From the NCBI GenBank assembly GCA_964187785.1, contig OZ076412.1, positions 42,656,001 to 42,720,000 of the forward strand: DNA of 64,000 nucleotides. The letters are read 5' to 3'. Positions 2,539 through 42,000 of this stretch are shown piece after piece (the stretch's first letter is position 1; each line of letters starts with the position of its first letter). Below the pieces are notes generated by a model, which ran no database searches, was not told the origin of the DNA, and saw only the letters and a list, made by a program, of their open reading frames with translations. Origin of the DNA: Amphiscolops sp. MND2022. Taxonomy: Eukaryota. The position numbers were made by a program, and so were the translations under genes.

Positions 2539-2972
2539 AATGAAAACCCCAAAGTTCAATTAGTTTTCATAGAAACTGTTTAACGATACATTACTTTTGA
2601 TTAATATTGACTATTTATTGGAAAGGCAACTGCAAAAGCAGAAAAACAAATTTAAGTAGAAAAGAAAAATAACATTCCATAATAATTTGGCTCTTCATTT
2701 CCGAATTTTGAAAAAACCTCATTTTGTTGAGATTCGCTACGTAAGAGTTAGCTCGCTGACATGGAAAAGCGGATAAAATTTTTGAATTTCCCTAACATCT
2801 GTTCCATATCTTTACTGCTCGATCTCTTTACAGAAGCAAATCCAAAACAATCAAGATATATTCACATATATGTATACTGATAAGATATATTTAACTCCCT
2901 TGCCCTAAATGTTCAACATTCTTATGTTCATTTCCAGTATACATATCCGGGAAAAATGTTGCAGTGACCAAC

Positions 2973-3041
2973 CTCCTTTGGGTCGCACAATTTTCTTGCC
3001 AGTGATTGGGTCGATGATGGTTTCCATTTCACATGCAAGCT
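2973..3041 (-). CDS. DPxTG-repeat exon (69 nt): (E)LACEMETIIDPITGKKIVRPKG
   Basis: ttttag acceptor, G/gttggt donor, phase 1-1. Confidence 0.8.
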
Positions 3042-15000: not shown

Positions 15001-18000
15001 TGTTGAATTAAACGCTCTCAGGTTCAGTTACCTCAAGAATAACTATTGTTTCAACAGATCCAAAAATAATTATTTTTATTCGTTTGAGTGTAAAAATAAA
15101 TTATTTTATTATATTTATTATAATTATTCTTACCCATAATTATTTATTGAACACTCCTGACTGAAGATATATGTATAAATGTCTGGAATGGAAATGGTTA
15201 TGATGATGGAATTACTATTTCTACCAGTGACTCTATGCATGTATTTCATTTACCAAAGAAGGGTTTTTTGTTCAATTTCTTTGACTCTTTCGGGGGCGGA
15301 TCTTTTTGGATTTTGAAAAGGTCTAAAGAGTAAAATCAATTGATCATCTGGTTAAAAATTAGATAATAATGTAATTATATGGCATAGTTTTTAATCTCGC
15401 CTAAATTCCTAATTTTCAAACTTGTGATGGACTCACAGAGAAATCAATCAGCCCGAACAGTTCGACTAACACCTCCCCAGCAAGAATACTTTAGAAAACT
15501 CAAAATGATTAGTTGTTATCAACGGAATTCTATATTCTTCCGAAAATCTTCATAATAAAACGGATTGCATTTAAGTTTTTGGATCTTTATAGTCTTTCTC
15601 ATTTACTAGGAAGATGTATGGAATCTCTGAAATAAAAGAATATTCGAAGAACCCTTCAATATTGTATAATTTTTCAACTCACCCAAAATGTTGCCACTTT
15701 TCGTTCGCATGAACAGCTTGCCTGTTTCAGGATCCACAAAAATTTCACAATCATCAGAAAGTTCTGAAATGGAAATCAATTTGGTGAACATTTTTGTTGA
15801 ATATTCATGCTAAGGAATATAAATGTGATTTTTTTGCAAAAAAATGCAAGGAAATTATTCGATGTCATTCAAAAATCAAGGTTTCAAACTTTTTACAAGC
15901 GGTAAAACGTACCATGCAGTCTCCCGGACTTAGTTCTGACGTAACTCTTTCCTGTGGTGGGGTCAATGAAGACACTGCCGTCAGACACTAGCTCTTGTAG
16001 CTCCCCACACGCAGTTCTCAAATACATTTTCCCGGTGGCAGGATCAGTTAACACTGTGATGTCCCCTTCTGCCCCTGAACAAACGTGAACAACAATGAGC
16101 AACCAAAGTAGATTTGACTAATTTACCAATTTACTAATAATTCAAGTTAATTAGTTCTCGAGATACGGAAAAACTTCATTGCACGTTGCCCTTCAATCCA
16201 AGAGTTTCGAAGAGTTTTCAAAACCAAGCAAAACCCGGGCACATTGAATTATATCGATGAACTTTTTATTTTAGCAACCGGGTTTTAAATTGACGCAATT
16301 GAATTTTCTTCGGATATCAGAATTCTCATAGTGTTTGCAATGGCGAAGAAAATATGGTAACATTCAATGCAAGTTTCTCAATCCAGAATAGTTCAACCGT
16401 ATGTGACAATCGTTTCCAATTATAGTAGAGACAGACCTTTCTGCATTACGTAAGTCTTCCCAGTTTTGGGATCGACGAACACGTCGACGTCTCCTTTTAT
16501 CTCCATCAGGCGCCCTGACTTTGTCTTCATGTACACTTTGCCCGTCAAAGGATCCTTGATAATTTCAGCATCCATCGGCATCTCTGAAACATACGCACGA
16601 CACGCTGGCTTGCTTGAAATATGACAAAACGGATCATTTCCACGACAGTTGTATTTTCCAAAATGTTTCACTAAAACCAAGAGCCAATAAAGTACTAATT
16701 TTCGTAATTGGAAAAAAACTTCGTAAATTTTGAATTCAAAAGCATACATTTTGTAATTTAATGTCAAAATCCCAGAAAATTGAGAGATAGAAAGCATCTT
16801 CAAAACAAAGAGAGATCTTCAAACATCTATCTACGATTGTTACTTCAAGTTTTGAGTATTTTTTTTCAAATGACGCAATGGGTAAAAACTTAACTTAAAA
16901 GCCTAAACTACCTTTCAGAGTTCCGGATTTGGTGCGTAGGTAAGTCTTGCCAGTGACTGGGTCCACGTATATTTCCATCTCTTCATCCATGGCCGCCTCC
17001 ACAATTCTGCCAGACTTGGTTCTGATGTACGTTATTCCTGTGTTGGGGTCGGTAAACACTCCTGATTGCTGTGCACCTGTGAAATTGAGGGAAAATGAAA
17101 TCAGAGCGCCTTGGTTTTGCCCATTGAAATGTAAAGCACTCTTCATAATGTTTAAATCGTTATATAAGTTTCCATGGAAAAACTTTCGACGAAGTAGAGG
17201 CGAAATTTGAATTAGTGAATTCTCACCAGCTTTTGGAGCCAGATACATTTTCCCAGTTTTTGGGTCAGTGTACATGACCATGTTCTCATCCACTTCCGAG
17301 ACAATTTTGCCACTTTTGGTCCTCAAGTAAACCTTTCCAGTGTTTGGATCGGTCCACATTTCCAAAATTTGGCCTGAAAAAAAAACGTTTAACCGTTAAA
17401 AAAGTCTACTTTAAGAAATTTTACACACAAGAAAATTAAAATTTGAATACTCAGTGAACTCACGTATGATTTATGCAACTTAGTGTTTTTGACGGAATGC
17501 TAAATTTTTGGCGATTGTCAGGCGAACGCAAGTTTTTTCTTCAGACTGTAGAAAATGCACAAGAAAGTGAAAGCACAAGTAAAGCCAAATACATAACTTT
17601 TTTCGTGGGTCTCGTGTTCCCCATTCTTTACTAAAGGACTTCGTGACCCGTACGTAGCAAATGGTACATGTATTAAAGTCTCAGTTTGAACTGGACATTC
17701 GTCAGACAATATTGTATTTTGAACTTTAATCAATAAATCCCCCTTTTCGGTCAGAAAGGGTTTCGGTCACGAACTTTTTCGTCAAACGGAGGTACCATTT
17801 CTGAAATATAACAGTTCGAAATGGATGTGCACTTTTTGATTGACAGCTCAATTGGGATTCATACTTCATTTCGAGATGCAGTTCATGGTTTGATTTTTCA
17901 TATTTGGTTTTTGGTTTGAGCGAATAATGATTCCTGGTTCACCTGTTGTATTACTAGCTGAATCAAAAAACGGAACGTTCAAAAATTTGCGTCTTCAAAA

Positions 18001-21000
18001 TTGTTTTATTTGTAAACAAGAAACTGAAAATCGTTCAATTTTTCTGTCAGTCATTTAGAATGAAGCTCCTGTTACGTAATCACATCTTCAACTACGGATG
18101 TATCGAACCTTCAGAAAAAGTGAAGACGTCTTGACCAGCCATTTCATTCTCACTTTCAATGTGAAAATTCATTCGCTTCGAAGAAAAGTTGCCAACTTGA
18201 ATGATTGACAGCAGCTTTCAAAGATGTTGTGAAACTTTTGTTGACAAATATTTGAAGCTTTGAGAGAGCGAAAATTTTTATACGTTCCATTTTTTTGGTT
18301 CACCTAGTATGCTTTTACAGCTACATTGAAATTTGAGTCTTTTAAAGCCTCCAAAACTCTACTAGGTGAATAGAAAAAGGAACGCACAAAACTTTGCGTC
18401 TTCAAAATGGCTTTATTTGTAAACAAGACACTGCAACCCTTTCACATTTCCTGTCAATCAATCATAATCAAGCTCATGTTACGTTCAAGAAGGATCGTTT
18501 GAACTATCGGAAAAAGTCTAGACGTCTGTACCAGTCATCAGGTTCTCGCTGTTGGTGGAAGCTCTTTTGCTTCTGAGAAAAGGAGATTGGTAGCAACATT
18601 TAAAGTTGTTTTCAAACGTTTGTTGACAAATATTTGAAATTTTGAGAGCTCGAAAATTTTCAAGAGTTCCTTTTTTTGGTTCACTTAGTATGAACAAATT
18701 TTTTCTTATCTTTAGAAAAATGCAAAACAGTGAGTGCCTGGGTCTGCCTCAGGTGAGAAAATTTTTACTGGTGATTAATTTATTCACAGTTATTCTCACA
18801 ACTCCAGTCACGGTACTGTCCGTTGTTCTCCTATTACGTCACGATGACCAGGTGCGCGAGGGATACCTTATAAGGAAAAACTACGCAACCTATGCCAGCA
18901 TTATATTGGCTGGGTCTTCACTCATAACGATGATGACTGGGCTCATAGGAGAGTTTGCTATTTGGAAGTCAAATACCAAAGGTGAGAGAAAATGAGAAAA
19001 AGAAAAGATCTCCTGTGTAAAATAAACCATTAAATTTTTCCTCTCAGCGTCAAAAAATATCTCCTAAATGTGCTGTGAACCAATCAAACGAAATGAAATA
19101 ACACCCAAAATTTGGTTTCCAATATGGAAAAATACATTTATGTCACAGATTTTTGACCAAGTTGAAACAAAAATCAAACCTACAAATCCGATTGCGAATC
19201 AAATGCCAATCCAATTTCTCGAATTCAGAAACACCTTTGCTTCACTCGAAATTTCTAAAGTGTCCACTTGAAATCAATCTGTGCATTTTTAAAACAGGTA
19301 CAGTTATATACATGTGGACTTCTCTGGGACTGATTACAACGCAGATGGTAGTGATTGGGTGTATCTTTGTGTGGAAGGACCACCTGTACGAGATAATCAA
19401 GATAGACTTGGATGGAAGTCTGGAGTACTACCATAGGGAGCCGTTGGTCAGACAACACTGGGACCATCTGCAGAGCAACCTCCAATGTTGTGGACACGAG
19501 GGTCCCCGTACGTGGCAGAGGATTTTCATGAACGAGACATTTTCTGCTGAAGCCGACGGTCCGCAAGCGCTCATATCTTGAAATGAAATGATTGATATTT
19601 CATCAAATTTTTTAAAAGCTCCTGGCTTTCAATCAAAGTTTTAACGAGAGATATCTAGACAAATATTAGGCAACAAAAAGTAGCAAAAACGTCACTGCTT
19701 GACGGACTTGGAGATCGTTTCTCTCTGAAAGTTTCTGCTCAATTCCTTTGAAAGAAATCAAGTCGGCTTCTGGAGAGTTCACATTTTAATTATTCCAAAA
19801 TACGTTTTTTCCCCAATCAATCTTCTCAGTTTTCCACAATTCAAGCCTATTTTCATTTTATTATTTTCCGCCCATATTTCATATGGGAAAGGAAAATATT
19901 TAAATCAAACGGGTTTTTTTTTTTTTTACAAAATTTGCCAAGATTTTATTTATATTTAAATTTAAGGGTGTTACCCATAGAATTCAACCCACATAAATTT
20001 AGCTTCGTGCGATATGTATTTGTAGAGATTTTTGAAGTTTTTTTAAAAAATGACGAAAATGACCCCTTAATGACAAAATGACCCCTTAATGACAAAATGA
20101 CCCCGAAAATGACAAAAATTCCCAAATTTCTCATTTTTAAACATTTTTATGCAATTTTTGCCATTTTTTGAGACACCGCGAATTAGAAAAATGGACAAGA
20201 TGAATCGAAGCTTTCTTTTCTTCGAACTTCTCAGCGTTTTTATAGTGCATTAGTTATTCTTGAGCCTCAAATTTATGTAGTTGTAGAACAGTTCGGGGCG
20301 GAAAATATCCCGCTCCTCAGCGGGTGTCTTGTTATATGTTTAGATTGAATGAAGTGAACCATTTTGGTTGAAATTTAGGTTTCTGCAAAAAGTTTGAAAC
20401 TGTTTAGAAAAAAATTTTAGAGAGCTTCTTACTGAACGAATTTCTTTTTGGCTCGTAGAGAAAATTTTTGGCGAGTCATCAGTTGCCAAGAAAACATGAC
20501 TCGGGAGTTTGCAAAAGTTTCTTGATCTAGTTTTGTAGTTGAGTTCTGTGGAAATCCATTTTTCGAATACTGAATCAGACTACATTTTTCCCGATACTTC
20601 ACAATCTAAATTACAATGTCTTCCAATTTGAAATTGATTTTCATGTTATAAAACAATAAACACTGATCACCAGTATTTTCCAAATGGGTGCTTTTTGGTT
20701 TATGGATCTCAACTATCACGCTTATGATGGTCACGAAATCTTGTCAGTTGTGAGTCATGCTGATCCAATGCTTACTCTTGTCCCTAAGTCATGTTCAGAC
20801 AGACCAAAACTCTTTGTGACAGTTAACTGCCCCATTTTGTCTGTTACGGAGACCTCCTTCTCTATTTACAATGATACTTCTACTACTCTGGAGGTCGATG
20901 ATGACTTCCAATACACTGCAGAGTGCCTGAAACTAGATCTTAATCACTTTTTGTTATCCCACATCCATTCGAAAGGTAACACCAAATCCAATCTTTAATT

Positions 21001-24000
21001 CTTTCCCCAATCTTGTATTTTGAAAACGTATGGAATGTTTGAAATGGCAAAGGTTGTTAGGCGTCTTTTTGTAATGCACTAATAATCTTCCCTTTTTGTC
21101 AATCAATGGAACACATGCTAGAATAATGCAACATTTCTTGCCAGATGTCAAAAAACAACAAAAATGTCACTAGAGTATGCATTTCAAGGACATGTCTTTC
21201 TAGGGCATGCATTTCTAGGACAACTATGCATATAGTAGTTAGTTAATTGTTATATTAAAAAATAACTTTGGGAGAAAAGGTCATAACTTCTGACAGACAT
21301 TCAAACTTCTTCACCTACTTTTCACCTAGAAACGGTGTAATCGGTACATCCATCCAGACGTTGGTGCCATGCTTCTCTTGAAAAAAGTTAAAAGATTCAT
21401 TATTATTTTTTAAATTTTCAACTATTTCCACTATCTTCATTCTATTTGTCGACTTTTCGCTGTAAAAATTTTCATTTCATTTACCAAAAACTGGCTTCAA
21501 AGTCACTCGATGATCATTATCTAGCAAAGGAGCTCCCTTCTTGTGGGCGAAAACTTTTGGGTTTTTGCTTATTTCTTTGGCAAAACAATCTTTTTCTTGA
21601 CAGGTTGCGTGGAAGCAGTCAGTGAATATCTCATCGACCACGTGACAATCATAGCCTACGCTGGCATCGCTTTCATAGCTGCACAGATGCTGGCCATCTT
21701 TCTTGCCTTCAAATTTCGTCACTTGGCTACGCAAGTTGGGCTCAATTCTGACATCTGAAGCCACCGAGATGTGAAGCTCTGTTTAGATGTTCACTGTAAG
21801 ATGATTTTGAGATCCCATCTCAATTTTGATTGCTTCGTTCAGACTTGAAATGGATTCCGTATGAACCTTCCGGGGGTCTTATTTTAATGGAACGATTCAA
21901 TTTGCAACGCAAGTAGATGTTGGACAACTAGGTATAAATCACATTTGCAGCTTTGAGTGCACAAACTATCGTGTGATTATATTGGTTGATGGAAAAATCA
22001 AGTCTCTGCATTTTACGATCTTTTTAAAAGTTAGTAAGCATTTCAGTTGATTGTTGTCATAACTCAACAAATGTTGAACAATTGTTGTGAATTGTTAGAT
22101 TTCTTTACCAAATTAGTTTCTGAATAATTCTCTTTGGGTTTGGAAAAGCTTTAATATTGCTTTCAAAAAAGCTTACTGGCTGTTTTCAAGAGAATTCTGT
22201 CACACTGTCAAAAAATAACCCGAAAATTTTTTAAAAATACTTTGGTGAAATGAAACATTTACCGAAGAAGTCGCACATGTCCGATAATACCCAAAATGGT
22301 GAACCCATCTGGCCTAAAAATGCTTTTTAAACACAAAAATCAAAACTAAAGAAAGGAACTCCTTTGCGAATGTTTTTTTTGGAAACAAGACGCCCGCTGA
22401 GCAGCGGGATATTTTCCGCCCCGAACTGTTTTACAACTACATAAGTTTGAGGCTCAAGAATAAGCCAATGCACTATAAAAATGCCAATAAGTTCGAAGAA
22501 AAGAAAACTTTGATTCATCGTACCCCATTTTAAAGGAAACCCCTAATTTATCATTTCAGAGAGCTGGCCACTTTTAGTTTTTTTCGGCACTATGCGACTT
22601 ACCGAGAAAAAAGAAAGTTTTCAATAAATTTCTTGGAAATAATTTTTTAGAAACAATTTTCAAAATTTTTAGTTTTCGAGTTTTTCTGTAAAGGAAACAA
22701 GTTTCCCGAGTCTTGAGGGTGACCTCTTTGTTACTTTTGATCACGTGGAACTGATGAGTTTTCTTCTTGATTGTGGGAAATACCTCATTTAAGTTTTTTT
22801 CGACTCTGTACCTTTTTCCGAAACTTTCATTTGGTCAAAGTGTACCCCTTGCTTTCATAGCACATTTCGGCTTGAGAAAAGCAGTTTCGCGAGCTGAAAC
22901 TCGTTTCGCCATAAATGGTAAATGGGAAAATGGTAAAAGCTTGAAATTAGGTCTGTTTCAAATTTAGGAAAGTTGAGCGATCCCGGTTTGTTATATTATT
23001 GTAAATTGTTTCACCAGAAGTGTCAAAAATTGCAAATAGTTTTGACAACTTTAGGGTCAATTTGAGGAACTTTTCGAACATGAATCTACAGATGTCTCTT
23101 CAAAAATAGGCCTACTGGACACCGAGTTTAGCTGTTGTTGAATGTTTACACCATTCTAACCCACGAGTAGCTCGAACCATCTTTCTTAGGAAGATGTACT
23201 CCATATCTAGTGAATTTGCTTGGAGGTTTTTGAATGACAAATATTGGACAAATGAGGTTGAAACTTACGTTTTCAAGTAAATTATTTGAAAGTTGTGCAA
23301 ATAAACTTGTCTAATATTTTTTCGGAACACTACCGGTACCTAGACGTTTCAATCCTGAGCCTATGATATTTCTGATTGAAGTAAGTTTTAGGAAAGTGTC
23401 CAAAATTGGGACTATATTGTCGAAAATAAAGAAAGTTCGGAAACTTTGACATCTTTGCTGTAAACTCAGTGAACTTCATGCCCATTTTTCCCACAATTGC
23501 GTTTTGAATACCTTATTGATTAAACGCTGAGGTCATTGAAATTTCTCTTCCTTAAAAAAACTTTCATGGCTTGAACAAAAATGGGATTAGTTTGTCAAAC
23601 ATTGTGCTTTTTTTGTTGTTTCATGGATTTTCGGGTGTTTTTGAGACCAATTCCAACAAAAAATGCAGTTATCTCTTGAAAATTGCCTACTGGAGATACC
23701 CGGATTAGTTAGTATTGAGTGTTTAAAACCATTTTATGCAAGGAAGTAGGTCAAAAAACAACAAAAAACTGCCTGAAAATGTAAAAAAAAACTTGAAAAT
23801 TTCCAGTTTTTCCAAATTATTCAGTTTTCCAAGGCTCACCGAAACAACAAGTTTGCCCACGCCTTAAGCGTTTAAACACTGTAGTCCACGAAGTCTATCG
23901 ATATTTTGACAAAAAGTGGAAAAAAAGGAATTTGATTATTTTTCGAAATTTTGTCTTTTTCGATCTCGATTCCGGACAATTTCCTATTGAAAAACTGTAT

Positions 24001-27000
24001 TTATCTCTTTTCTAAGCATACTAGACAACACTTATTTTCCTTGTTGACCCTTTTCAACGTTCCAATTGGCGAAGTTTGACAAAAATTTGGAAAAATTGCA
24101 TGAAATCTTTGAAAATTGGAAATTTTTAGGATTTTTGTCATTTTCGGTGTCAATTTGAGACATTTTCAACCAGAATATTGCAATTATGTCTTCATTAAAG
24201 ACTACGGGACGTACCAATTTTTTCATTGTTGACCCTTCAAAACATTCCAATCCACGAAGTCTGTGAAACTTTAACAAAAAATGCATAAAACTTTACTTTG
24301 AAAGTTGGAAAATTTTGTGTTTTTTGTCAATTTCGGTGTCAATTTGAGACATTTTCAATCAGAATATTGCAATTGTCTTCATTAAAGACTACGGGACGTA
24401 TCGACTTTTTCCTTGTTGACCCTTCAAAACATTCCAATCCACGAAGTCTGTGAAACTTTCACAAAAAAGGCATAAAACTTTACTTTGAAAGTTGGAAAAC
24501 TTTGTGTTTTTTGTCAATTTCGGTGTCAATTTGAGACATTTTCATTTAAAAAATTGCAATAAACTCTTAAAAATGGTCACTGGACAACCAACGTTTTCCT
24601 TGTTGACCCCTTAAAACGTTCCAATCCACGAAGTCTCCAAAATTTGACGAGAAATGCGTAGAAACTTTGAAAAATGGAAAATTTAGGGACTTTTGTCATT
24701 TTCGGTGTCAATTTGAGACTTTTTTCAGTAAACAAACAGCCATTATCTCTTCGGAAACGCCTACTGGACAACAAACCTTGTACCATGTTGATCGTTTTCA
24801 ACATTCTAGTCCACGAATTCTATCGAAAATTTGACAAAAACTGCTTAAAAACGTTAAAAATCTGCAAATTTTTGGTTTTCTTTGTCATTTTTGGGTCTTT
24901 TTCTTTCGTAAAAAACCTTTTATCTCTTCATAAACGACTACTGGCCACCGAGTTTTTGTCTTTGTGAATCTTTTCAACATTCTAATCCACGACATTTATC
25001 GGAAACTCGACAAAAATTGCATTAAAACGTAAAAAAAATGCAAATTTTCTTTTTTTTGGGGTCATTTTTAAGTTATTTTGGGGTCATTCTGTGGTCCTTG
25101 GGGTCAACTAAAAAAGTCCGGAAATCTCCACAAATACAATTCGCACGAAGCTAAATTTATGTGAGCTGAATTCTATGGGTGAAACCCTTTAGCTTTGATA
25201 TAAATAAATTCTTGGCAAATTTTGTAAAAAAAAAAACCCGTTCGATTTAAATATTTTCCTTTCCCATATGAAATATGGGCGGAAAATAAAAATCTCAGTA
25301 CCCAATATTTGACTTGACATCCAAATAAGTATGTTAAAACTGAGAGGAAGGGTTTTTGGACAATTTTTTATCATTCTGGCACTTTGCAGAACTTTAATTC
25401 GCTTCGACCGGGTTGGAATAAGTTACGACGAAAAACCACTGTAATAGCCGCGTTTTATTTGATATAGCGTCTAAAAAACTGCATTCTTTCTCGAATTATA
25501 TTGCTCATCAACCAGAATTTTGAACGCGGTGGTAATAGGGATGAAATGATTTTGCATGAGAGGAGCTGAGATGGTTCATGATTCATTTGGAAGAATAGCG
25601 GAGCCAAATTGCAAAATATCAATTCAACTCAGGGCCCTTTCAGCTGTAGGGTGCCAATCAGCCTAATATTTACTTAGTTGAAAATGAAAAAGCTTTCACT
25701 TAGCTGAAAAATTGCATATTTCAGCGTGTAGAAATGATAGTCATATTTTTATATTGGTTGTATGACTCAGCCTTAGACAAAACTAGCCGCTGTAGTAGTA
25801 ACAAGACGGGAACGTCTAAAGTCGGCGCTATATCTTAGGCTCAAAAAACGCAAAAGATTTTTAAAAAAAAAACTTGAAATTTTTGATTTTAAAAATTGTA
25901 AAAGCGGGACCCTTTTGGCTTTTTTGAAAATCCAGTTTGTTGCAAAATATAAAAAAATATCATGTACTTGCGCATACATTCGGAATGTGTCTTTGTCCAA
26001 TCAAATTTTAGAATGAATTGGATCACCCTTTAAGAATGAATTCAATCGCGCGTTGAAAATGAATTTATACTGGTGAAACCGATAAAAACTATTCGTTTTT
26101 TAGTCGGCGCTTCATGTAGTGCAACGCGACTACTATAGTGACTGTTTTTTTTCAATCCACACGAACTGGGCAAAATAATTCTACAAAGTCCTACGAAATT
26201 TTACGGTGTACCATTTGAAGTAGAGAACTGAACCAAAAAGGTCTTTCCTTTTTTCCGCGTAATATACAAAACCGGGCGAGACTGAAGGGTCCTTTGTGAG
26301 ACTTTTTTCAGAAACAAAATCTTTCCCAAAGAATCCCGCTTTCAATTTTTCGATAATTTGCAGGAGAATGGATGTTAAAAATCCCAGAAGGTCCCCTTTC
26401 AGTTTTTTTTGGCATCGTGAGACTTTTTTTGAGAAATTTAAATGTCTTCAAAGGGTTCCCCTTCAATTTTTTGATAATTTGCAACAGAATGGATGTTAAA
26501 AAATCCGAAATGGCGCGCCAATGCTGTCCAACTTTTCGGGTTTTTCGGGTTTTGTAAAAAATACTTGACACTTTGAAGTACTTTTCCTATTTTTGAGCCT
26601 TAGTTATGGCGCCGACTTTATGCCATTTCCCGGTATTAAAATACCATCTACATCCAAAAACAGGCAAGTAGAGACGTTTCTCATTATTTCTGTATAACAT
26701 CGACAATAAACTTGTCCTCAAATGAGGACAGCCAATTTTTCGCAATCAATAAAACATTAGGAAACACAAAAAAAACATTGGAAAACGAAAATTTGTTTTT
26801 CTTATCGACAAACTATTGGACAATCTATTGGGGCGTCTGATTATTTGTGTCAATATAGTTCGTTTCCGAGCCATCGGCAAAAAAGTACAGAGTAAAATTT
26901 GCAAAAGGCATTTCACAAAATTTACTTTTTTTCAATAACTGAGCACTTGTCCCTTCATCTCAATTGATTTGAAAAATTTCAATAGCTTCTTGTCATTGTG

Positions 27001-30000: not shown

Positions 30001-33000
30001 AAATTACGAAGAAGAATTTGTTATTAACGCCATCGGGCAACTAGCAACGGTAAACGCCCGAATAGGACGGATTTTCGACCAATCAGAAGACGCGACCACG
30101 GCAGCCGAAGCAAACATGCGTGATACGCGCTCGCTAATTGACACGCGACGCTACCAAACAAACAAAAGCCATATTGATTTTAATTACCGTATACAACAGC
30201 ATTCATCCAATACTGACTGTATAAAAATGAATAACAATGAAAACAATACACGCTTCTTCCGCACAGACGGACAATTACGACACCATTGGGGTGCAGATGA
30301 TGATATCATGGCTATTATCAATGCAAGAGACAAATCACCCGAAACTACGGAACTCGTGAAAAGAAGAGTACAATTGGCGAGACCGGGTGTAATGAGACCA
30401 CATTTCAACAAGAACTTGGGCCGAGAAATTTACATACCGAGAAGACCGGAAGAAGATGAAAGAAGAGAAATAAAGCGAATTGACATTCAACTGAGACAAA
30501 AGATCAGAGAGCAACATATCGGCGGAGGATATTTTCAAAACTTTGGGAACGACATTCCCCAGAGACAAAACACCGAACAACAACAAACCGAGAGAAATGA
30601 ACCGGCCCCAGGAAATGAAACCAATCGAGATACAGAATCCACCGTCTCAAACAACTCGGAGGAGCAGTAGCCACCCACGAACCCGGAACTTACCCAGCAA
30701 TACCAGTCCAAGAATACAGAGACGGGCCAATCGAAGAAATTGCCGTACACTACGTGAGAATTAACCGTGTAGTTGAAGAAAAACCGAAGCGCAACAGACA
30801 ACAAGAAGATAACGTCAGATCGGCAGAACTAGATTTCATGCTAGACTTGGAAACGATAATCAAAGAGACGGCCGCTGACCCTGATCTCATCGAATTAAAC
30901 TGCTGCATCGAGGACAACAAATTGGACCAAATTCCGCAGAACTACAAAACTGTAGCCAAGAAATTGACATACCGTTGGGGCATTATATTGGTTGATGACC
31001 GCATCGTAATTCCAAAATCATTACGCTACGCAGCACTCAATGCACTACATTTTGGACACCCCGGGATAAACAAAATGTACAACGACGCAGCAATATTCTG
31101 GTGGCCGAACATGCGGGAAGATATTGAAAAGAAATCAAAAACCTGCTCAGCCTGCCTCAACGCTGGTAAGAATCTAAAATTCCAAATACCTCAAACCGAA
31201 AAATCAAAAATTGAACCGCCAAAAACACCTGGCGAAGAAATACAAATTGATTTTACGGGAAATCTCAACAATAAAAAATTGCAAAGCAATCTGTTTATAC
31301 TAATTGCGGTGGATAAAAATAGCCGATGGCCAGTAGCAAAAATATGTAAAAATACGAACCATGAAACCGTAATTTCATTTCTGGATGAATACATAAATGT
31401 ACACGGAGTACCGAAACAAATAAAGTCGGACAAAGGCGGCGCCTTCATCTCCAAAGAATACATAGAATACTGCAAGACGCATAATATCAACCGCATATAC
31501 GGTACGGCAAACCTACATACTGGCACCGGATTGGTCGAGCGCACAATCCAATCGTTGAAGAACTTAACTCTGGCAAATTTAGAAGACAACCAAAATCTTC
31601 GTGAAAGCGTAAATAGAGCACTATCGTCCTAAGATTTACAATACACTCAGAAACAAAGAAAACTCCGTTTGAATTGCATTTCGGACGGACACCAAGAACC
31701 AAACTGTCTAACTTAAAAAATTCTATTTCAGTGGATTCCAAAGATTTCTCGGTGTACATCACCAGAAATTCAACCGGACAAATCACGGATCATCTGGTAA
31801 TGTCAAAGAAAAAGATAGCCGAACCAAGATACAAACGAGGGATGACATTCTCCCAAACAAAAAAACCGACCAGTGCGGTAAGTAAATTTGAATATCCTTT
31901 CAAATTTTACGAAAAAAAACCACAAAAAAGGATCCATGGAAAGTAAATTCAAAAATAAAGTACAAACCGCTGTATCTGGAACAAGACACACCGTGACAAC
32001 GGATAAAATTAAAATTATCCACAGGAAATTAATATCCAACCTACCGTTTCAGCAAACAACAACACAGGCAAAGAAGATCAACACCCGCCAAAACACCGCA
32101 GACCAACCCACCTGCTCCCAAACACTGGACAATACAACCACCAGCGGAGCACCCTGCATCTACAGCAGGAAAGAAACACCGAAGAACACCGCAAACTACG
32201 AAAGAAGCGAGGACTGGTCGAAAAGAAAGGAAATACCCAGAAACAACAAGGGACAATTTACTTCACCAAACAAAAACACAGAAAACTTGAACCTGAGCAT
32301 CATATCTGACGACGACGACGACTTCGAATGTTACAACAAAGCGGAAGGAAAACCGATACAAGTCAACATCGAAGATGAACTTCAGCTCCACCCGAAGGAA
32401 ACTAACCTGACACCGGAACAAGGTAGCTATAAAAGGAAAAATAGAACAGAAAAACCGATAGACCCGGTCAGAAGATCTAATAGACTACCTTTTGCAAAAC
32501 AAACCGAAAAATTAGGCGGGATACTGTACCACTTTAGTAACAATAAGAAAAAATTAACTAACCACGGTAATCTATTACAGGAAACAACAGCGGAAACAGC
32601 GGAGAGAAATGAGACGGAGAACGACCGTCCAATGCGGCAAAACAATGAAAAAATCTGTACCATACGGCCACTACAACAAACCCCCATTGGACAACTCCGA
32701 AGAGGGGGGAATGTGATATCATGCAGATATCATGACCTTCAAAACTATGAACCTACACAGAGAGCATACTATTGTTGTTAAACATAAAACTCTAATTACT
32801 GTCAATTTGAGTTTACTACATTTTGTGTTGTACAATAGAGTATTGACCATTGTACTTGAGATTGATACTATAGATTAGTTGCTAAAGAAGATACGAATTT
32901 ATCGTCTTAGATAAAGAGCATTGTTACCGTAATAGACCGCGATTACAACAGTCATACATTTCCTCAATATGAGGAGTACTAACCGTCGGCTGTGCGAACA

Positions 33001-36000
33001 TAGGTGATTCCCGTTTCGGGGTCTACAAACACTTCCATGCCTGGATTTCGTCTTTCTCCCAGATACATTTTGCCAGTGATTGGGTCCACGTACATTTCCA
33101 AGTGATCGCCCAATTCTGAAATACGTGAATCATATGTTTATCAATGAAACAAACGCTGTGAAAAGATTGAAGATTTCTGTTCAAATATGTATTATAAGTT
33201 CCGAAAATTTAAAAATTTTTTTACCGTGTTCTAGTACCGTGTTTTCTGCAGATGTTTTACACCCAGTTGTAATCTAGACATTTGCCGGAAGGCAAAGCAC
33301 AATGAGCATTCAGAGCGCCCAGACTATTGTCAGTTTCAAGGGAAAGTTTACAATTTTTTTGTGTGAATAAAAATTCCTAGTTAAAACTCGGGAACTTTTT
33401 GGTTATACCGCAACGAGTAAGATACTAACCCATACATAACCAGCAAGTCTGCATCACATGGTCAAAATAGGAAAAACGCCACCAAAGTTTTTCAAATCAG
33501 TTTTTTGATATAAACTCCCTGCAAATTCACGTCGTACCAATGATTCATGTACACTTTAGGCCTTTAGGGGATACAAAAACGAACCATATTCTGATATAAA
33601 TAACCACAATTCAAATGGCCACATTGAAAACTACAATGCGGTCAGGAATATCTGTCAAAAATTTTGAAAGTGACCGATTTTATGAACACTTCATTCTCAT
33701 TGACAAGCCTCGAATTTTTCGATGAAGCCGTCATGTTTAACCCAAACTGCCTTTGTTGACTAACATTGTTAAAAGACTCCCGTTGCAAGCTGCGGCAGAT
33801 AAATTTTCATCACGTGTCTAGATTGGCCGATTTAGTAAAAGCGACTGAAAGGGGGAAAATAGTCTGATGTGCTACTGGTCATTTGATAAACTTGATTACT
33901 TGTAGACGATACTTCTCACGACTTCAAAAGGTTGCGGATTGATGTCAGCGATATAGTTATTAGAATCGATCCAATAAGGTTGGAACCGCGTTGGGACACC
34001 TAGGCCCCGGACTATTAGCAGTGAAACTAGGACAACCACTCAACTGGCACATCTGCAACGCTTCAATTAAGTCATACTAGTTATGAAACCGATAGCCCAT
34101 GAAATATTGAGACAGTTGCGAACGTTTTCGGAACCCTGATGCAAGCGTAGGGTAAGGACTGGCCCAATGTAAACTAAACCCGAATATAATGTATATCTTC
34201 ACCAGTCAACCTACGATCATTAAATTTTCTCAAGATACACACCTACCACTTTTGAGTGAAATACATGCAAGTAACATTCATAGGTGCAGCGCGCGAGGAG
34301 TATTGTTCCTCGAAGATACGCGCGTGCCTAGTCCAAGACACACGTTCAACTTTGACTTATAATATATTGAATGGATCACAATAAGAAAAGTAGTCAGTCG
34401 CAACCGAGCGAGGGACTATATCAATACCCTATCCGTGGGGTAACCGCGTTAAGTAAACAAACCATCTTGGAATCATGTAACTCGGAATCGAATAACCCTA
34501 TGTTCATCTAGCACGACATAGATGACCATTATATGACACGGGAACGCATCAAGGCTATATGTGGACCTGAAGGTCTTTCCAGTGTGGCCACACCTGAACA
34601 TATTCAAAAACATGCATTTAAACATGTGAATGAGCCTCTCTTTCGTTCTACTCTATGCATTTTAATGCAATAGAAGCGACGGTGTGCCTCGTTCATACTG
34701 ACGGGAGAAGTTTCCTCACATGTAATTCATTTAACTGGAGGTCATTGAAAGATTGTACCTCCTTCAGAAAATTCTTTGAAAGACGAACTTCAGAGAAGTT
34801 GTTGAAAAATTTGTAATTGGAGGTAAAGAATGTCTAGTCGAATTATCACTATGTTGGCAGCGGCCAGCCATGGCGTAAAAAAGTAAACATATGCAAACTT
34901 GAGATGCCAACACCCAACACCTAGTAATGTAAAAGTCTAGTATGACAGAATGTGAGAATGAGATCACAAGAAACACGTGAAATGAACAGATATACCTTGC
35001 GAGGAAACGAAGTAATTGAAAAGAAACAAGAAAAGAGCTCGGAGCTTGTTTAGTGTCGCAAGGTTACATGAGTACTGTGCTGTCGCTAGCTCTGCAAGTT
35101 CGAGGGTCGGCAGTGCATTTACTGACAGATCCAGGACAGACTACTAGGTTTGTTGAAGTTGGAGCTTCAGCGAGATTGAATGCTGACCAACGTAACTGTC
35201 TGAATCGCGGTTTTTGTGTAATTGTGTCTTTTTATTGAGAACTATTTAATGCATTGAGTGAAATTATTCGGTTGGATTTTTTATTTATTCTCTATGTACT
35301 AAAATGAAATGATATATAATGATTTTTCAGTTGATAAACGGAGCCGATAGGGCAAAAACAGAAAAGAATTTAACAGTAATTTGTAAAAAAAAGTTGAAAA
35401 CTTTTGTTTGCCCATTAGGACATCCTTTTTTGGATTAATAGTCCGGTTAGAGGTAAAGTCTCTTGACCCCCCAAATTGTCATTTTCTTGTAGGTGTCAAA
35501 ACTTCATAGCAATTACTCGGAACTCTCAATTTACGAATTATTAGGTGAAGCAAAAAACTGAAGCAAAAAATTTCAGTCCTTGAAAGTAATATTTGTGAAC
35601 ATGGTGGTGGAACTTTTCAATTTCCTGTCACTCATTTGTATCGAAGGTATCGTTACGTAGTCACGTCTGCAACTAAAGGTGGTTTGAACCTTCCGAAAAC
35701 GTTGAAACATCTTAAGTCGTTTGGTTTTCACTTTTGATAAATGAAAGTTATTTCTCTTCCATGAAAATCTGAACAAATGTTGACAAATGTTCATAGATTG
35801 GAAACTCAAACTTCAATTGATGCGTTCCGTTTTTAGTCGGCGCTTTTCTTAAGAAAAGAGCCCGACTATTACAGTCACTCGTTTTTTTTCTTTTTTTTAT
35901 TTAAGACAGACTCGAAGCGACGTACGTTAAAATTAACGTTCAACTACTAAATACAGTACTAAACTACTGGACCGCTAAAGGCAAACGGGGAGCGCATTTA

Positions 36001-39000
36001 TTTACTTTTTAAACGTTACCTACAAGCCCGGACGGGACTAAAATTCCCCCCCTTTCAATTTTTTTCGGCACTGTGAGACTTTTTTTTCGAATTTTTTTTA
36101 ATGTCCCCAAAGGGTCCCCCTTTGAGTTTTTTGTTATTTTGCTACAGAATGCGTGTTTATAAATCAAAAAGGGTCCCCCTTTTATATTTTTCGGCACTGT
36201 GCGACATTTTCCGAAAGAATTTTTTTTCAGAAATTTCAAGTTTTTTTCCAAAAAAAATATTTTGCGCTTTTTGAGCCTTAGATATAGCGCCGACTTGAGA
36301 CGTTCCCGTCTTGTTTAGTCGTTGCTTCTCGTAGAAAACGCATACTATAGCACTGTCTTTTTCAAAGACCAGCGACGTGACAAATTTTTTAAGCTTTATA
36401 AGCTGAGCTGTTGCTTCCACTAACTGCCACACTAAACTTGTAACTTCTACTGCCATTTGGCATAGAGGTTAATTAGGAATTTTTTGAGGTCTGCCAAGCA
36501 GAAAGAAGTGGGTTCGAGTCTCGCCCTTGACCATTTTTTGTGCATGTTATTTCGGCTTTGTGAAACCTTTTTTCGCAAATTTTTTATTAATGTCTCCAAA
36601 GGGCCCCCTTCATTTTTTATGTATTTTGCAACAGAATGGATGTTCAAAAAATTCCAAAGGGTCCCTTTCACTTTTTTCGGCACTATGCGACTTACCGGAG
36701 ACTTCAAAAACATTCCGGAAAATTTTTTTGATTCAGGTACTGTAGAAGAATGCTTTGAAGTCTTTTTGCTATTTATGAGCCTTAGATATAGCGCCGACTT
36801 GGGCCGTTCCCGGGTTGTTTTGTTTCATCTAGTTTACTATATACTAGGTTGTTCGAAAAATTAACCGCCGTGGTCTGTGTATAATTTTGATACACACTCG
36901 TCATATGATTGCTTCCAACAATTGTGGGTAATATGAACAAAATGTTACCTTTCAAGGTTCCAGACTTGGTTCTAAGATACGTTTTACCATCTTCACCAAT
37001 AACCACTTCCATGATTTCGCCGTCTTTGGTCTTCACGTACATTTTGCCAGTTAAGGGGTCTGTGAAAATCTGTAGACCAGGGTCTGAAACAAATAGTTCA
37101 ATACTACATTTGGAAGCTTTAAACTTTGTCAGAGTTTTGTATGAAAGATGAGACGACATACAATTTTGAAACCACCAAACATGACTAACCTTTGTTTTGC
37201 TTCAAAAATACTTTTCCTGTGACTGGATCTGTTACAAGTTCCATGTCTGCCGGAAGCTCTGAAAAGTTAGAATTAAAAAGTGATTTAGTTCTTTCTTTGT
37301 AAACTGTCGTTCTGAATGACTAAAAGCATTGAAGTATTTACCTCTGAGTTTCCCGGATTTGGTTTTCAAGAAAACTTTGCCAGTGACGGGATCAGTGTAG
37401 ATTTCAAGAATTTCACCTGAAAAAAAACAGTGACAAATCGTCCTATCGAGAGGGTATCTTGAGAAAATGCTATGAAAAACATTGCAAAAGTTTTAATTTA
37501 AAAAAACATACTTTTGCGAGTGCCGATTTTTTTTATTTTAGTGACAGTTAAAACCCATCCAAATATCAATTCAAGTTATTTTTTCGAAACATTTCACAAC
37601 TTTTTCGATCTGATTTGGAATACAGAAAATATTTCATCAGAAAATACAGACAAGCGTTGCAAATAAGAAACGTAAGCACAATAGGCTGAGGTCTGAATAG
37701 AATTAAAATGCTCTATTATATACCAAGATTGGAAACTCTTAGAAGTAGAAGTAGAAGTAGAAATAGAAATCGAAAAAGAAATAAGAATAGAAACTGCGAT
37801 AGTTACCATCTTTTGTGCGGATGAACTGTTTGCCAGTGACTGGGTCAGTGAACACTTCGAACGACTCTCCCCCTCCCCCGGTTCCGGCTGCCCCCGTTTT
37901 GCCAATGAACATTTTCCCAGTAACCGGGTCCGTGAAAATCTGCATATCGTCCGGCAATGCTGCACACAAACATAATAGATAAACGTTACCGCCTTTTTCT
38001 TCCTTCTAATTCTTAGAAAACATTAAAAAATTTTATTCAGACTCAAAAATTAAAGTTCCACAACATAGACTTCCAAACATGTGGAAATTTTTAACGGTAC
38101 AATCTAGTATCAATTTATGGCTACAATCTGGTTTCGTGTTATCGCTTCAGTTTGGTATCATCTAGAGTATTGAACATGACGACAACTAGATACTTGATAC
38201 CAAATTTGGAAGTGAGATTTCATGAAGATTTCATTTCTCTCCAATTCTGATGTTTGCGAAAGAAATACCTCTCAGTTTTCCAGACTTTGTCTTGAGGTAT
38301 GTTTTTCCGTCCTCTCCCACCACAATCTCCAGCAGTTCTCCGTCTTCAGTTCGGATGTATTGTTTTCCGGTGATAGGATCCGTGAAAATCTCATATTGCG
38401 CTTCGTCTGGAAAGAAAAACAATTTGATCTTCTGGACTTGTTCCGATAAGCAATCAAACTTTTTAAAAAAATTTTTTAAATTTATTTTACACTGCACGAA
38501 TGTTTCCAAATGTTTTTTTTATAACTTGAAGTAATCATTTCAACAATAGTAGACTGTTGCTAAGATTGCTCACTAAGGTAATAGTTTTCACAAGCTACTT
38601 AAGTTTTAGCCAAGAGACAACAAGACAACCTGTGATGCTCCGAAGTTTCCGATTCTTCATAATTTTTGTCAGTCTGGCATTTTTTGCGGGAAAATGGTCA
38701 AATAACAGGTGTCAGGAAATTACGCCCAAAGTGGACCTTACGCACAATGAATACGGGGACGATTAATAACTTCCGAAAATTAAGAAGGAGGAAGGCCGAG
38801 TCATGCAACTTTTCTTCAAATTATTGGACGTAATGTCCGCTTTGGATGTAATGTCCTAGAACCCAAATAACTGTTTTGACCAAAAAGATATTGCTATTCA
38901 CCTGGCACCATGGTAAGAATTTCACTCTTCACTGACCTTTTGGTTTTGTGCCGATGTACATCTTGCCTGTTGTGGGATCTACATACAATTCCATGCCAGG

Positions 39001-42000
39001 GGGAAGTTCCTTTAAATTTCCACTGGCTGTGCGCATGTACACTTTTCCTGTTTTAGGGTCAGTGATGATCTCCATAATCTTACCGTCCTTGGTTTTAATG
39101 AACATCTTGCCAGTTATTGGATCCGTGAAAACTTCCATCCCAGGGTCTGCAACATTACAAAAAGTCTTATAATTTAAAAACTTAAATTCAAAAAACACTT
39201 GCAACAATGAAGTAAGATTTTTAAAAAATGAATTCATCCGATCTTTGTTGCCCAGCAAGAGAATATGGCATATAGAGACATCATATCAGCTGTATGATTT
39301 CATGGAGCGTTTTAAGTGTAATAAGCAAATTGAAAAGCTCACTAATGGGTTTTCATCAAAATGCAAAATTACCAAGTTAGCTTGGTAAAACTATACGAGC
39401 AAAAACTAAGGAAGATTATCAATTTGTTCAGTTCTGATAAACTTATTTGCAGTTTCGTCACTCTTACAACACTTACTACTGGAAATTTCCAGTGCGCTCA
39501 CCTTTCTTCTCTCCCAGGTACATTTTACCAGTGATGGGATCTGTGTAGAGATCTAGAGATCCAGGCACCTCGATCAGCTTTCCTGACTTTGTGCGGAACA
39601 TGAGTTTTCCTGTTTTGGGGTCCTTGAACACTTCAATTCTTTCTCCGCTCTCAGTGATGACGTACATTTTGCCATCTTTGTCCACAAAAACTTCCAACTT
39701 GGGGATTTCTTTCCTCTTCCGTCGCTGCTTCAGCTCCCCTGTTTCCGGGTCTATGTAATACTCCATCTCCCCGTCTAAAAGTTTGCTTTTGATATTCCAT
39801 TTCAAAGAGTACTGAACCGCATAGACTACTAACAGGTTGACTCATTATAGTTATTATATTACCTTCATGCCATTTGAAATGCTGAATAATGCCTACTTCA
39901 CAAAAAACAATCAACGGACTGTACGCAAAAATTGGTCATTTTGTTGTTTTAGTTGAAAAGATTATAAGATTGCTTCACAGAACTCAAATTTCATTTCGGC
40001 CATTCTCCATATGGAATGAAATTCAACTTCTCTGTCTCGTCCCCAAACTTTGCCATTTTTTTCCAATTTCATACTTATATGATTATAGAAGTTCTTCCAG
40101 AGATATTAACGACAAAAAATTTTGTTCACGGCATACCTATTTCTGGAGATACAAATACTCTTCTTTAATAAATACTTACAATAAAGATAACCTGAAATTT
40201 CGTAGTCTAAAGCTACGTTCTAAAAAGTTTATCGAGCTTTAGCTAGCCGTAAGAATCGTAAGTAAATCATGACTATCGTTGATTGTGCAACAGTGGCTAT
40301 AAATGCTTATTGCTAATTTTGATTTTCAGAAAAACGTTTCGAAAAATTACTTTGAATTGGTAATAGAATATCATCCATTATTATAGGGTTTTGTAGAAAT
40401 TAGTTTTACGCTGGAACATTTTGTTATTTTCCGCCCATATTTCATATGGGAAAGGAAAATATTTAAATCAAACGGGTTTTTTTTTTTTTTTTTACAAAAT
40501 TTGCCAAGATTTTATTTATATTTAAATTTAAGGGTGTTACCCATAGAATTCAACCCACATAAATTTAGCTTCGTGCGATATGTATTTGTAGAGATTTTTG
40601 AAGTTTTTTTAAAAAATGACGAAAATGACCCCTTAATGACAAAATGACCCCTTAATGACAAAATGACCCCGAAAATGACAAAAATTCCCAAATTTCTCAT
40701 TTTTAAACATTTTTATGCAATTTTTGCCATTTTTTGAGACACCGCGAATTAGAAAAATGGACAAGATGAATCGAAGCTTTCTTTTCTTCGAACTTCTCAG
40801 CGTTTTTATAGTGCATTAGTTATTCTTGAGCCTCAAATTTATGTAGTTGTAGAACAGTTCGGGGCGGAAAATATCCCGCTCCTCAGCGGGCGTCTTGTTG
40901 AAGTTTAGAACATTATTGAAGGTACGGTGCTAGAACAGTATCGGTGTCTATTAGTAGATGCTTGTAATTTTAAAGTTACGACAAAATTTATGACGGAATT
41001 TCCACGCAGAATGGCCCGCAAAGATTTTAATCCGCCAAAACATTCAATTTTGACAGTTTTTTACACTTTTCTTCAATAAGAATGTTCTTGATGATTTAAA
41101 CATCCACGGAGTTCAATGACAAAATAATTAGTTCCTTGGCGTTGTTTTTGGGCCAAAGTGGGTCAAAATTTCCATATTTTTTAGCCATGTTCGTTGTTTA
41201 TTAGCTACACTCGAGCCTTAAAAATTAGTTGTGTTTAAAATTATTTGGGAGCGGAAAACATCCTAATCCGTCTCATTACCTAATCTGATGCATATTTTAC
41301 TGATGCAATTTTCAATTTGGTTCAAAGATCCTGCTGTCCAATTGGATATACTGTCATTTCTTTTCACATTGTAACACAAATTTGTCAGTTTAATTTTGAA
41401 CCAATTTTATGAAAAAGTACTTCAACTATTTAATGATTTCAATTAGGTGTCCTACCATCTCCCATGAGGTCGGCGAGTTTTGTTCCCCATAGCCGTGCAG
41501 CCACTTTTGCATCCATGCCCAGATCTGCGCCCCCAAACAACTGGGAGAGGACTGCGGCTGCCACTAGAGTCGCCCTTCTGTAAAGACCCTTCTTTCCTAA
41601 ACGAGAGTCGCTCCGATGAGAGTCACCGCTTGATCACTGTGCATATCGAAGCATGTAAAAACATACTAGTGAATGCATACATGAATGCAGAACTACATGA
41701 CAGAATGAGACTACGTTTCTAATGGAAGAAGTTTCTAATTTGTTATTAGCCGCGCTACACTGTGTGTTTGTGAAGAAAAATTATAGACGAGGGCGAAAAA
41801 TGAGACATTTTCTGCTAAAACTAGAAAAGAAAATGTGTCCTGAAAATCAGCCATGAACCCCTCCCCATATATTGTAAACAATTTTAAATAAACACCATGA
41901 CGATGAACTGACGAAGTTTCAACAGTTTTCTGACTGTTGGGGTGCAAAGCACTTGCATTGATTCGATTTCAATCTCAGAAAAACTGTTGAAACGTGAACT

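Follow-up and report, generated by a model that had tools for sequence, protein, structure and literature searches.

What kind of protein is encoded by a tandem DPxTG repeat in the genome of Amphiscolops sp. MND2022, and does this repeat belong to any family described so far? The question arises from a stretch of 64,000 nucleotides (GenBank assembly GCA_964187785.1, contig OZ076412.1, positions 42,656,001 to 42,720,000, forward strand), which is referred to here as the window and whose positions are counted from its first letter. The DNA of the window is eukaryotic, with a G+C content of about 37%. A preliminary description had noticed the repeat between 15683 and 39774 and could assign it to no named family, suggesting either a Trp-less WW-like module or a continuous beta-meander. 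The reading that we hold to be probable is that the repeat represents an undescribed family of beta-hairpin repeats, carried by an intact and conserved multi-exon gene whose product would be an elongated intracellular scaffold.

Six-frame translation of the window returns 26 copies of DPxTG, all of them on the minus strand, against 0.27 on average and never more than 3 in 100 mononucleotide shuffles of the same DNA. The preliminary description had placed all 26 within 15683-39774; the number is right for the window as a whole, but that range holds 23, with the remaining three at 2962-3042, 3253-3333 and 3676-3756. A hidden Markov model (HMM) built from the units recovers every one of the 26 copies, at 37-55 bits each, and adds three half-units without DPxTG (GEDG at 36953-36988 and 38273-38308, DKDG at 39638-39673), which are the three (GE/DK)DG variants reported earlier. 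When the same HMM was run on both strands up to position 64000, nothing beyond these 26 copies and three variants was found. The 29 aligned units follow the consensus (D/E)-M-E-(V/I)-(F/Y)-T-D-P-x-T-G-K-x-Y-(L/V/I)-R-T-K-S-G-x-(L/I)-x-E, in agreement with the pattern first proposed, and the residues D, P, T, G and K are conserved in 26-29 of the 29. The spacing from turn to turn is 27 residues in 12 cases, 20-23 in 14 and 28-29 in three.

The DPxTG repeats are genuine coding exons of a large conserved animal gene. The range first described contains a real repeat but covers only part of this gene, with further exons on both sides. Each repeat cluster is an open stretch lying between a polypyrimidine-AG and a GT. 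Seventeen exons of the window (from 41596 to 2973) and one more below it (in L003) have AG/GT borders, lengths divisible by three and phase 1-1 throughout, and the 18 modelled exons, once joined, form an uninterrupted frame of 776 codons. The Glu of SGxLxE(L/M) is restored by the split codon at most junctions between repeat units, and a paralogue encodes that stretch contiguously and without an intron, which together provide strong internal support for the exon model. The gene spans at least 57 kb, or about 61 kb if the exon at 47.9 kb belongs to it, from at least position 43983 (probably 47907) to about 27 kb below the start of the window, and the encoded protein comprises roughly 1,200 residues or more. 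At its 5′ end, the candidate exon 47814..47907 bears a weak likeness to ATFGF(D/E)LP, with which the paralogue starts, its borders and start codon being provisional, and the frame of the large exon 42128..42847 is open over 239 codons both here and in the orthologue of a more distant species (L027), to which its head shows 67% nucleotide identity; this exon has no Pfam match. A side feature of the repeat array is the 150-nt intron 17077-17226 (minus strand), upstream of repeat exon 10, which is stop-free and in frame. Its retention would insert 50 residues and leave the protein unbroken, its splicing being suggested by the GT/AG borders and the paralogues.

Comparison between genomes indicates that the gene has been maintained. 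In L026, which represents the same or a sister genome, identity amounts to 97.4-99% with introns included, whereas in L027 the exons alone align, with their order kept, and the introns are unaligned. Over 387 codons, the window gene and its L027 orthologue share 84% amino acid identity, with nonsynonymous differences (pN) of 0.106 and synonymous differences (pS) of 0.79; as pS is saturated, the resulting pN/pS of 0.13 is an upper bound, and the repeat gene is under clear purifying selection. The genome contains four paralogous loci of the family, namely the window gene and three further ones on C4, C5 and C7. In the C7 gene the N-terminal half lies in one 601-codon exon (L015 7092-8894), equivalent to at least eight exons of the window gene, and this exon provided the contiguous protein P0001 for searches and folding. 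The units within the window protein share 42% mutual identity (24% at variable positions), while positional counterparts are 56-67% identical in the paralogue (67% for repeat exon 2) and 67-89% identical in the L027 orthologue. The 42% between units as compared with the 84% between orthologous exons implies that the array is old and that its positions have been kept individually, without homogenisation. Purifying selection and the preservation of positional identity make it very probable that the protein has a specific job.

As proposed here, the protein would consist of an N-terminal helical and disordered part without signal peptide, about 30 tandem beta-hairpin units and a C-terminal coiled-coil. 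Each unit would place one strand on either side of the DPxTG turn and end in a further tight turn, (K/T)(S/D)G, which would make the chain a beta-meander. Modules of three hairpins, with about 70 residues and seven strands each and with Pro/Gly-rich linkers at their borders, would occupy the first half, and in the second half 27-residue three-strand units would follow in succession. AlphaFold2 models were obtained for the paralogue P0001 (58 related rows) and for the 27-residue half of a paralogue (L018 2665-3300). The former shows four helices followed by about 45 strands of 3-7 residues joined by turns of 4-6 residues, with a predicted local distance difference test (pLDDT) above 90 in most repeat blocks and a predicted template modelling score (pTM) of 0.39. 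Its pLDDT falls at most of the Pro-rich linkers, namely at about residues 250, 400 and 470 and to a lesser degree at 330, and these linkers delimit modules of about 70 residues. The latter is all-beta, with a pLDDT of 70.5 and a pTM of 0.46. The continuous beta-meander of the preliminary description agrees with this secondary structure of short strands and tight turns in the paralogue.

The DPxTG turn looks to be of the same kind as those of chignolin and of the first hairpin of ubiquitin. Chignolin, GYDPETGTWG, is a designed mini-protein whose DPETG turn we take to be the same as that of the repeat. Strands 1-2 of ubiquitin (MQIFVKTLTGKTITLE) and the Cren7 hairpin (FKDPETGKYFRHKLPDD) share the turn sequence, the turn being of the 3:5 type I kind with a G1 bulge, and a unit of the window reads MQIFTDPVTGKMFIGK (MQIFTDPVTGK). 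Both the first hairpin of ubiquitin (MQIFVKTLTGK) and Cren7 (DPETGK) also come up when the repeat profile is compared with all PDB sequences. In chignolin, ubiquitin and Cren7, however, the hairpin stands singly inside another fold, whereas here it is the repeating unit of the whole protein. From the consensus and ordinary hairpin geometry, we infer that one face of the hairpin would carry the cross-strand pairs D-K, (F/Y)-Y and E-R and that the other would be aliphatic (V/I, L/V/I, M, T). The aliphatic face argues for some packing over a fully exposed single sheet, and the aromatic and salt-bridge face is a candidate surface for a repeated partner.

Searches for a known family found none that accommodates the repeat. 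None of the Pfam models describes it as a domain, and only DUF6440 and DUF4585 exceed the whole-protein cut-offs. DUF6440 (PF20037) scores 35.3 bits on window positions 16895-17365 and 51.6 on the paralogue (cut-off 26.5), as the sum of partial matches to positions 15-36 and 15-49 of its 53. DUF4585 (PF15232) scores 32.2 bits on the paralogue, its best stretch covering positions 9-41 of 73, and 13.3-15.7 on window pieces (cut-off 27). In both cases the matched stretch appears to be the DPxTGKxY-like hairpin. DUF6440 is a small bacterial protein, from which the window protein differs in architecture and host kingdom, whereas DUF4585 is a vertebrate Pfam family. In two proteins from Anaerolineales metagenome-assembled genomes (P0022 and P0046, of 715 and 909 residues), a (V/L)IQDPxTGKYYF motif recurs in repeats about 75-90 residues long. 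Both reach 44-53 bits on the vertebrate DUF4585, suggesting that it is the short hairpin motif to which this model responds. The models WW, OCRE, PepSY, PQQ_2, Tachylectin and YL1_C stay below the Pfam threshold on window pieces and on the paralogue. In the literature, DUF4585 is mentioned in passing only, and nothing relevant was found on DPxTG or DPxTGK peptides beyond motif coincidences in Cren7 and plectin.

Comparisons with whole proteins were made in libraries that hold almost only unnamed ENA open reading frames and few annotated eukaryotic proteomes. A word-indexed search with a 577-residue paralogue returned only the query itself and one 85%-identical ENA protein. With phmmer, the same query gave 64 matches among 1.84 billion representatives, about half of them short exon-sized fragments of relatives; no named eukaryotic protein is found among these 64, drawn mostly from the unnamed ENA library, and bacterial proteins of the propeller or DPxTGKYY type occur among the others. 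In a control search with the Gypsy polymerase of the window, all of the matches listed (at least 120) were likewise unnamed ENA entries, so the libraries are uninformative on annotated proteomes. The failure of the preliminary description to find a named family is borne out as far as the tested families go: as a member of the broad class of beta-hairpin repeats, it has a widespread and very stable turn in common with many unrelated proteins, and it conforms clearly to the definition of none of the families compared.

The alternative to the intracellular meander that survives best, and still an unlikely one, is a beta-hairpin superhelix (beta-solenoid) resembling choline-binding repeats and CROPs, with three hairpins per turn, which would bind a repeated small ligand or glycan. 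In those solenoids one turn is made of three hairpins, and a three-hairpin super-repeat is present in the first half of the protein. With both models, Foldseek matched best to choline-binding modules (LytB, E 1.2e-9, LytC and CbpF), CROPs and the glucan-binding domains of glucansucrases; sensor propellers, designed Cake propellers and Rhs shells are also among its best matches, and rows of the ESM Atlas carry Choline_bind families. All Foldseek matches, however, have a template modelling (TM) score of 0.2 or less, so that what matches is only the local strand-turn alphabet. A structure search of the ESM Atlas reached a TM of at most 0.26, and a feature search of the same resource with both halves of the paralogue gave no usable match. 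Tandem hairpins of about 20 residues are common to both systems, but for the choline-binding, cell-wall-binding and CROP families (PF01473, PF19127) there is no Pfam match, and the aromatic ligand pockets of their superhelix of stacked hairpins are absent. Those proteins are, moreover, bacterial and extracellular, whereas this one is animal and probably intracellular.

Somewhat less likely again is that the repeats form the blades of one or several closed beta-propellers (YVTN/NHL/PQQ-like), as distant kin of bacterial propeller repeats. The bacterial proteins matched by phmmer have 1,000-2,000 residues, with E between 1e-9 and 1e-4 and 26-33% identity; the four examined, at 29-33% identity, all contain Lactonase domains, and some of them YNCE or NHL. 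The propeller proteins share with the repeat a hydrophobic strand followed by D/N-P-x-T-(G/N)-K-h-Y-h, and there is a weak sequence likeness to designed Cake propellers, which together with BT4663 are found among the Foldseek matches. On the other hand, propeller models remain below the Pfam threshold on the paralogue, the period is 21, 27 or 70 residues here as compared with about 40, and closure of a ring of such four-strand blades is not predicted. The single-layer beta-sheet proteins, namely the central sheet of OspA and the G-box of CPAP/CENPJ (TCP10_C), are also among the nearest known systems; the CPAP G-box is defined by its Pfam model together with a single-layer meander, and the repeat does not qualify as one.

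A third possibility, that the protein is secreted or otherwise extracellular and contributes, as a structural or adhesive component, to a matrix such as that of the cnidocyst or of a skeleton, is improbable in the light of the rest of the protein. The long tandem repeats are rich in Gly, Thr and Lys (11% each over the 728 residues of the repeat region, with a pI of 5.4) and together with lineage restriction they resemble matrix proteins; likewise, the RRKR within a conserved RRKRK would suit a furin site. This polybasic cluster comes directly after the first hairpin (39700-39720, minus strand) and is conserved: the C7 paralogue shares RRKRK with the window gene and its orthologue, and C5 has RRKRR. 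It looks like a nuclear-localisation signal, a membrane-binding signal or a furin site. Against secretion, the N-termini of two relatives (the C7 paralogue and fragment P0027) have a start Met and no hydrophobic leader or signal peptide, and Cys amounts to 0.4%. The tails of the paralogues, of about 130-140 residues, are charged and heptad-like, one of them ending in KKKKK, and coiled-coil and polybasic tails of this kind usually belong to intracellular proteins. Helices are predicted in the head, including the hydrophobic AAAVLSQLFGG, and both the window gene and its orthologue also have a disordered insert there, about 180 residues long; nothing above threshold was found by Pfam on the N-terminal exons or the coiled-coil tails. 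The protein is probably intracellular, as judged from its composition and predicted parts. Of the structural, adhesive or scaffold roles first suggested, scaffold or structural thus stands as the most plausible guess and adhesive is unlikely, given the leaderless N-termini of the two relatives, the scarcity of Cys, the polybasic cluster and the coiled-coil tail.

Slightly more improbable still is the view that the 27-residue units are degenerate, Trp-less WW (or OCRE-like) tandem domains that would bind proline-rich peptides. A unit such as LPPGMELYVDPTTGKMYI aligns by eye, without gaps, with the WW consensus LPxGWE-x3-D-x2-GRxYY, three strands are predicted per 27-residue unit, which is close to WW in size, and both are short antiparallel sheets with a shared (L)Pxx-aromatic/Met-E-x3-D-x2-G-(K/R)-x-Y pattern; weak Pfam matches to WW and OCRE also occur on several pieces. 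Membership nevertheless fails. WW (PF00397) scores 12.0 and 15.3 bits on window pieces, as compared with a cut-off of 26.9, and has no match on the 577-residue paralogue. The pair of Trp residues 20-22 positions apart is missing, Trp making up 0.1% of the 728 residues (about one residue) and Met or Leu standing at the first Trp position, and the profile search of all PDB sequences retrieved neither WW nor OCRE. OCRE (PF17780), which is also a run of Tyr-rich hairpins and is defined by a Tyr-rich five-strand unit, stays below its cut-off of 24.7 bits in Pfam. MORN was named in the preliminary description as a family to compare, alongside WW and OCRE, both of which lie below threshold. It is a hairpin repeat of about 23 residues that occurs in intracellular animal proteins, with helical regions after it, as an elongated binding platform. 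MORN has no match up to E=10 on window pieces or E=1 on the paralogue, its signature, YxGxWxxGKxHG, is absent from the repeat, and MORN proteins are missing from the structural matches listed. Finally, a functionless decaying pseudogene or mobile-element-derived repeat is hardly credible: retroelements do lie within the introns and no RNA run contains the stretch, but each of the 18 modelled exons has an open frame and canonical splice sites, pN/pS is 0.13 towards a species with saturated synonymous sites, the four paralogues are collinear, and the retroelements are confined to introns, one of them antisense.

Several points weigh against the scaffold reading as well. The scaffold function is read purely from the architecture. 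Both AlphaFold2 models are of a paralogue and not of the window protein, and the three-dimensional arrangement is provisional, with a low pTM of 0.39-0.46. A homodimer test of the 138-residue coiled-coil tail of a paralogue scored 0.00, 0.33 and 0.01, a result that speaks neither for nor against pairing. Orthologues may already exist among annotated proteins, and so may relatives in other phyla. A search of the 40 kb below the window did not reveal the last C-terminal exons of the gene, and its start codon was not found either. In addition, the exon in L003 ends in phase 1 and the coiled-coil exon in L004 can start only in phase 0, which puts them out of frame; a short exon (expected to read about xNLDD) is probably missing in the 10 kb between them. 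As to expression, no RNA run was found to contain the stretch; four sequencing runs that do contain it keep 75-94% of its words and, since the stretch is mostly intronic, are most likely DNA.

Under the favoured reading of an intracellular hairpin-repeat protein, the product may act as a long, modular and semi-rigid scaffold or spacer, in which the head would anchor and the coiled-coil tail would pair. A more specific version is tentative, and we regard it as somewhat short of an even prospect. It combines a new repeat family with a modular beta-meander in which chignolin- or ubiquitin-type hairpins are arranged in threes as seven-strand modules, and it supposes a family confined to one lineage (taken as cnidarian), with four paralogues serving as intracellular scaffolds or springs of a lineage-specific cell structure.

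The introns of the gene contain two Gypsy-type elements and a tetraspanin gene on the opposite strand. The tetraspanin gene (18642-21758, plus strand) lies within a 15.6-kb intron; three exon-sized open reading frames match the Pfam Tetraspanin model at positions 1-73, 76-152 (34.9 bits, with the CCG motif) and 181-220. The same intron hosts a Ty3/Gypsy element with long terminal repeats (LTRs) at 26997-32950 (plus strand), antisense to the gene, whose 239-bp LTRs are 98.7% identical. This element is missing at an empty site of L026, so its insertion is recent or polymorphic. A second retroelement-like block (about 8000-14000, minus strand) takes up a large part of the intron between the exons at 15683 and 3755; its AT skew is strong, at -0.34 to -0.38. 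The 1,681-bp intron 39775-41455, between the helix exon and repeat exon 1, also varies in presence: it is absent in L027 (9851-10300), where the two exons are fused. It was considered as a recent gain on account of a target-site duplication, GGGAGATG, at both ends, and this was rejected because the spliced and the intronless orthologous sequences are equal in length. The exons and the paralogous loci are collected in Table 1.

Table 1. Exons assigned to the repeat gene, from 5′ to 3′, and paralogous loci in the genome.
Feature	Position	Strand	Support
Candidate 5′ coding exon (..DAAGEKGAFVKFKDELLNVGHELEMKE)	47814..47907	-	88% nucleotide identity to L027, flanks unaligned
N-terminal exon (..IENMKNLFSSLLAQNLLKKLRGE)	43907..43983	-	79% identity to L027; matches paralogue residues ENIGAIQGSEYAKNLLKKFR
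Large N-terminal exon, head (HRFIYYSLQYPEFLDILK..YYELCR) and ~180 low-complexity residues	42128..42847	-	splice borders provisional
Helix exon (KKGLYRRATLVAAAVLSQLFGG..KLADLMGD), hydrophobic/amphipathic, phase 1-1	41456..41596	-	AG/GT, 141 nt; matches paralogue
Repeat exon 1, four hairpin units (DPETG, DKDG, DPKTG, DPITG) and polybasic RRKRK	39502..39774	-	89% amino acid identity to L027
Repeat exon 2, single complete three-hairpin super-repeat, 70 residues	38937..39146	-	88% amino acid identity to L027
Repeat exon 3, DPITG and GEDG hairpins	38269..38406	-	HMM, splice borders, L027 comparison
Repeat exon 4, two DPVTG hairpins with Gly-rich linker between	37807..37959	-	splice borders, L027 comparison
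Repeat exon 5, one hairpin	37342..37416	-	splice borders, L027 comparison
Repeat exon 6, one hairpin	37190..37258	-	splice borders, L027 comparison
Repeat exon 7, DPLTG and GEDG hairpins	36949..37083	-	HMM, splice borders, L027 comparison
Repeat exon 8, two hairpins	32984..33115	-	near-identical peptide in C5 paralogue and fragment P0025
Repeat exon 9, two hairpins	17227..17373	-	border backed by paralogue exon ends
Repeat exon 10, two hairpins	16912..17076	-	splice borders, paralogues
Repeat exon 11, two hairpins	16437..16583	-	splice borders
Repeat exon 12, two hairpins	15913..16074	-	splice borders
Repeat exon 13, one 27-residue unit	15683..15763	-	splice borders
Repeat exon 14, one 27-residue unit, beyond the range first described	3675..3755	-	HMM, splice borders
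Repeat exon 15, one 27-residue unit, beyond the range first described	3252..3332	-	HMM, splice borders
Repeat exon 16, penultimate hairpin	2973..3041	-	splice borders, comparison with paralogue
Last hairpin exon	L003 3635-3703, ~16.3 kb below window start	-	AG/GT, phase 1-1
Coiled-coil exon	L004 3025-3192, up to ~27 kb below window start	-	comparison with paralogue
Paralogue locus	C7:36.237-36.264 Mb
Paralogue locus	C4:86.539-86.562 Mb
Paralogue locus	C5:33.317-33.341 Mb

Known beta-hairpin repeats are few (MORN, cell-wall-binding repeats and the G-box), and each of them is informative on how sheets, whether flat or superhelical, are stabilised and how a repeated partner is bound. The repeat described here is built on the turn that serves folding studies as the model of an autonomous hairpin, and this turn forms a near-invariant core in 27 of about 30 units. 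Repeat exon 2 corresponds to exactly one module and offers an easy target for expression and for the study of structure, folding and mechanics. If the family is lineage-restricted, its members would be candidate components of a lineage-specific cell structure.

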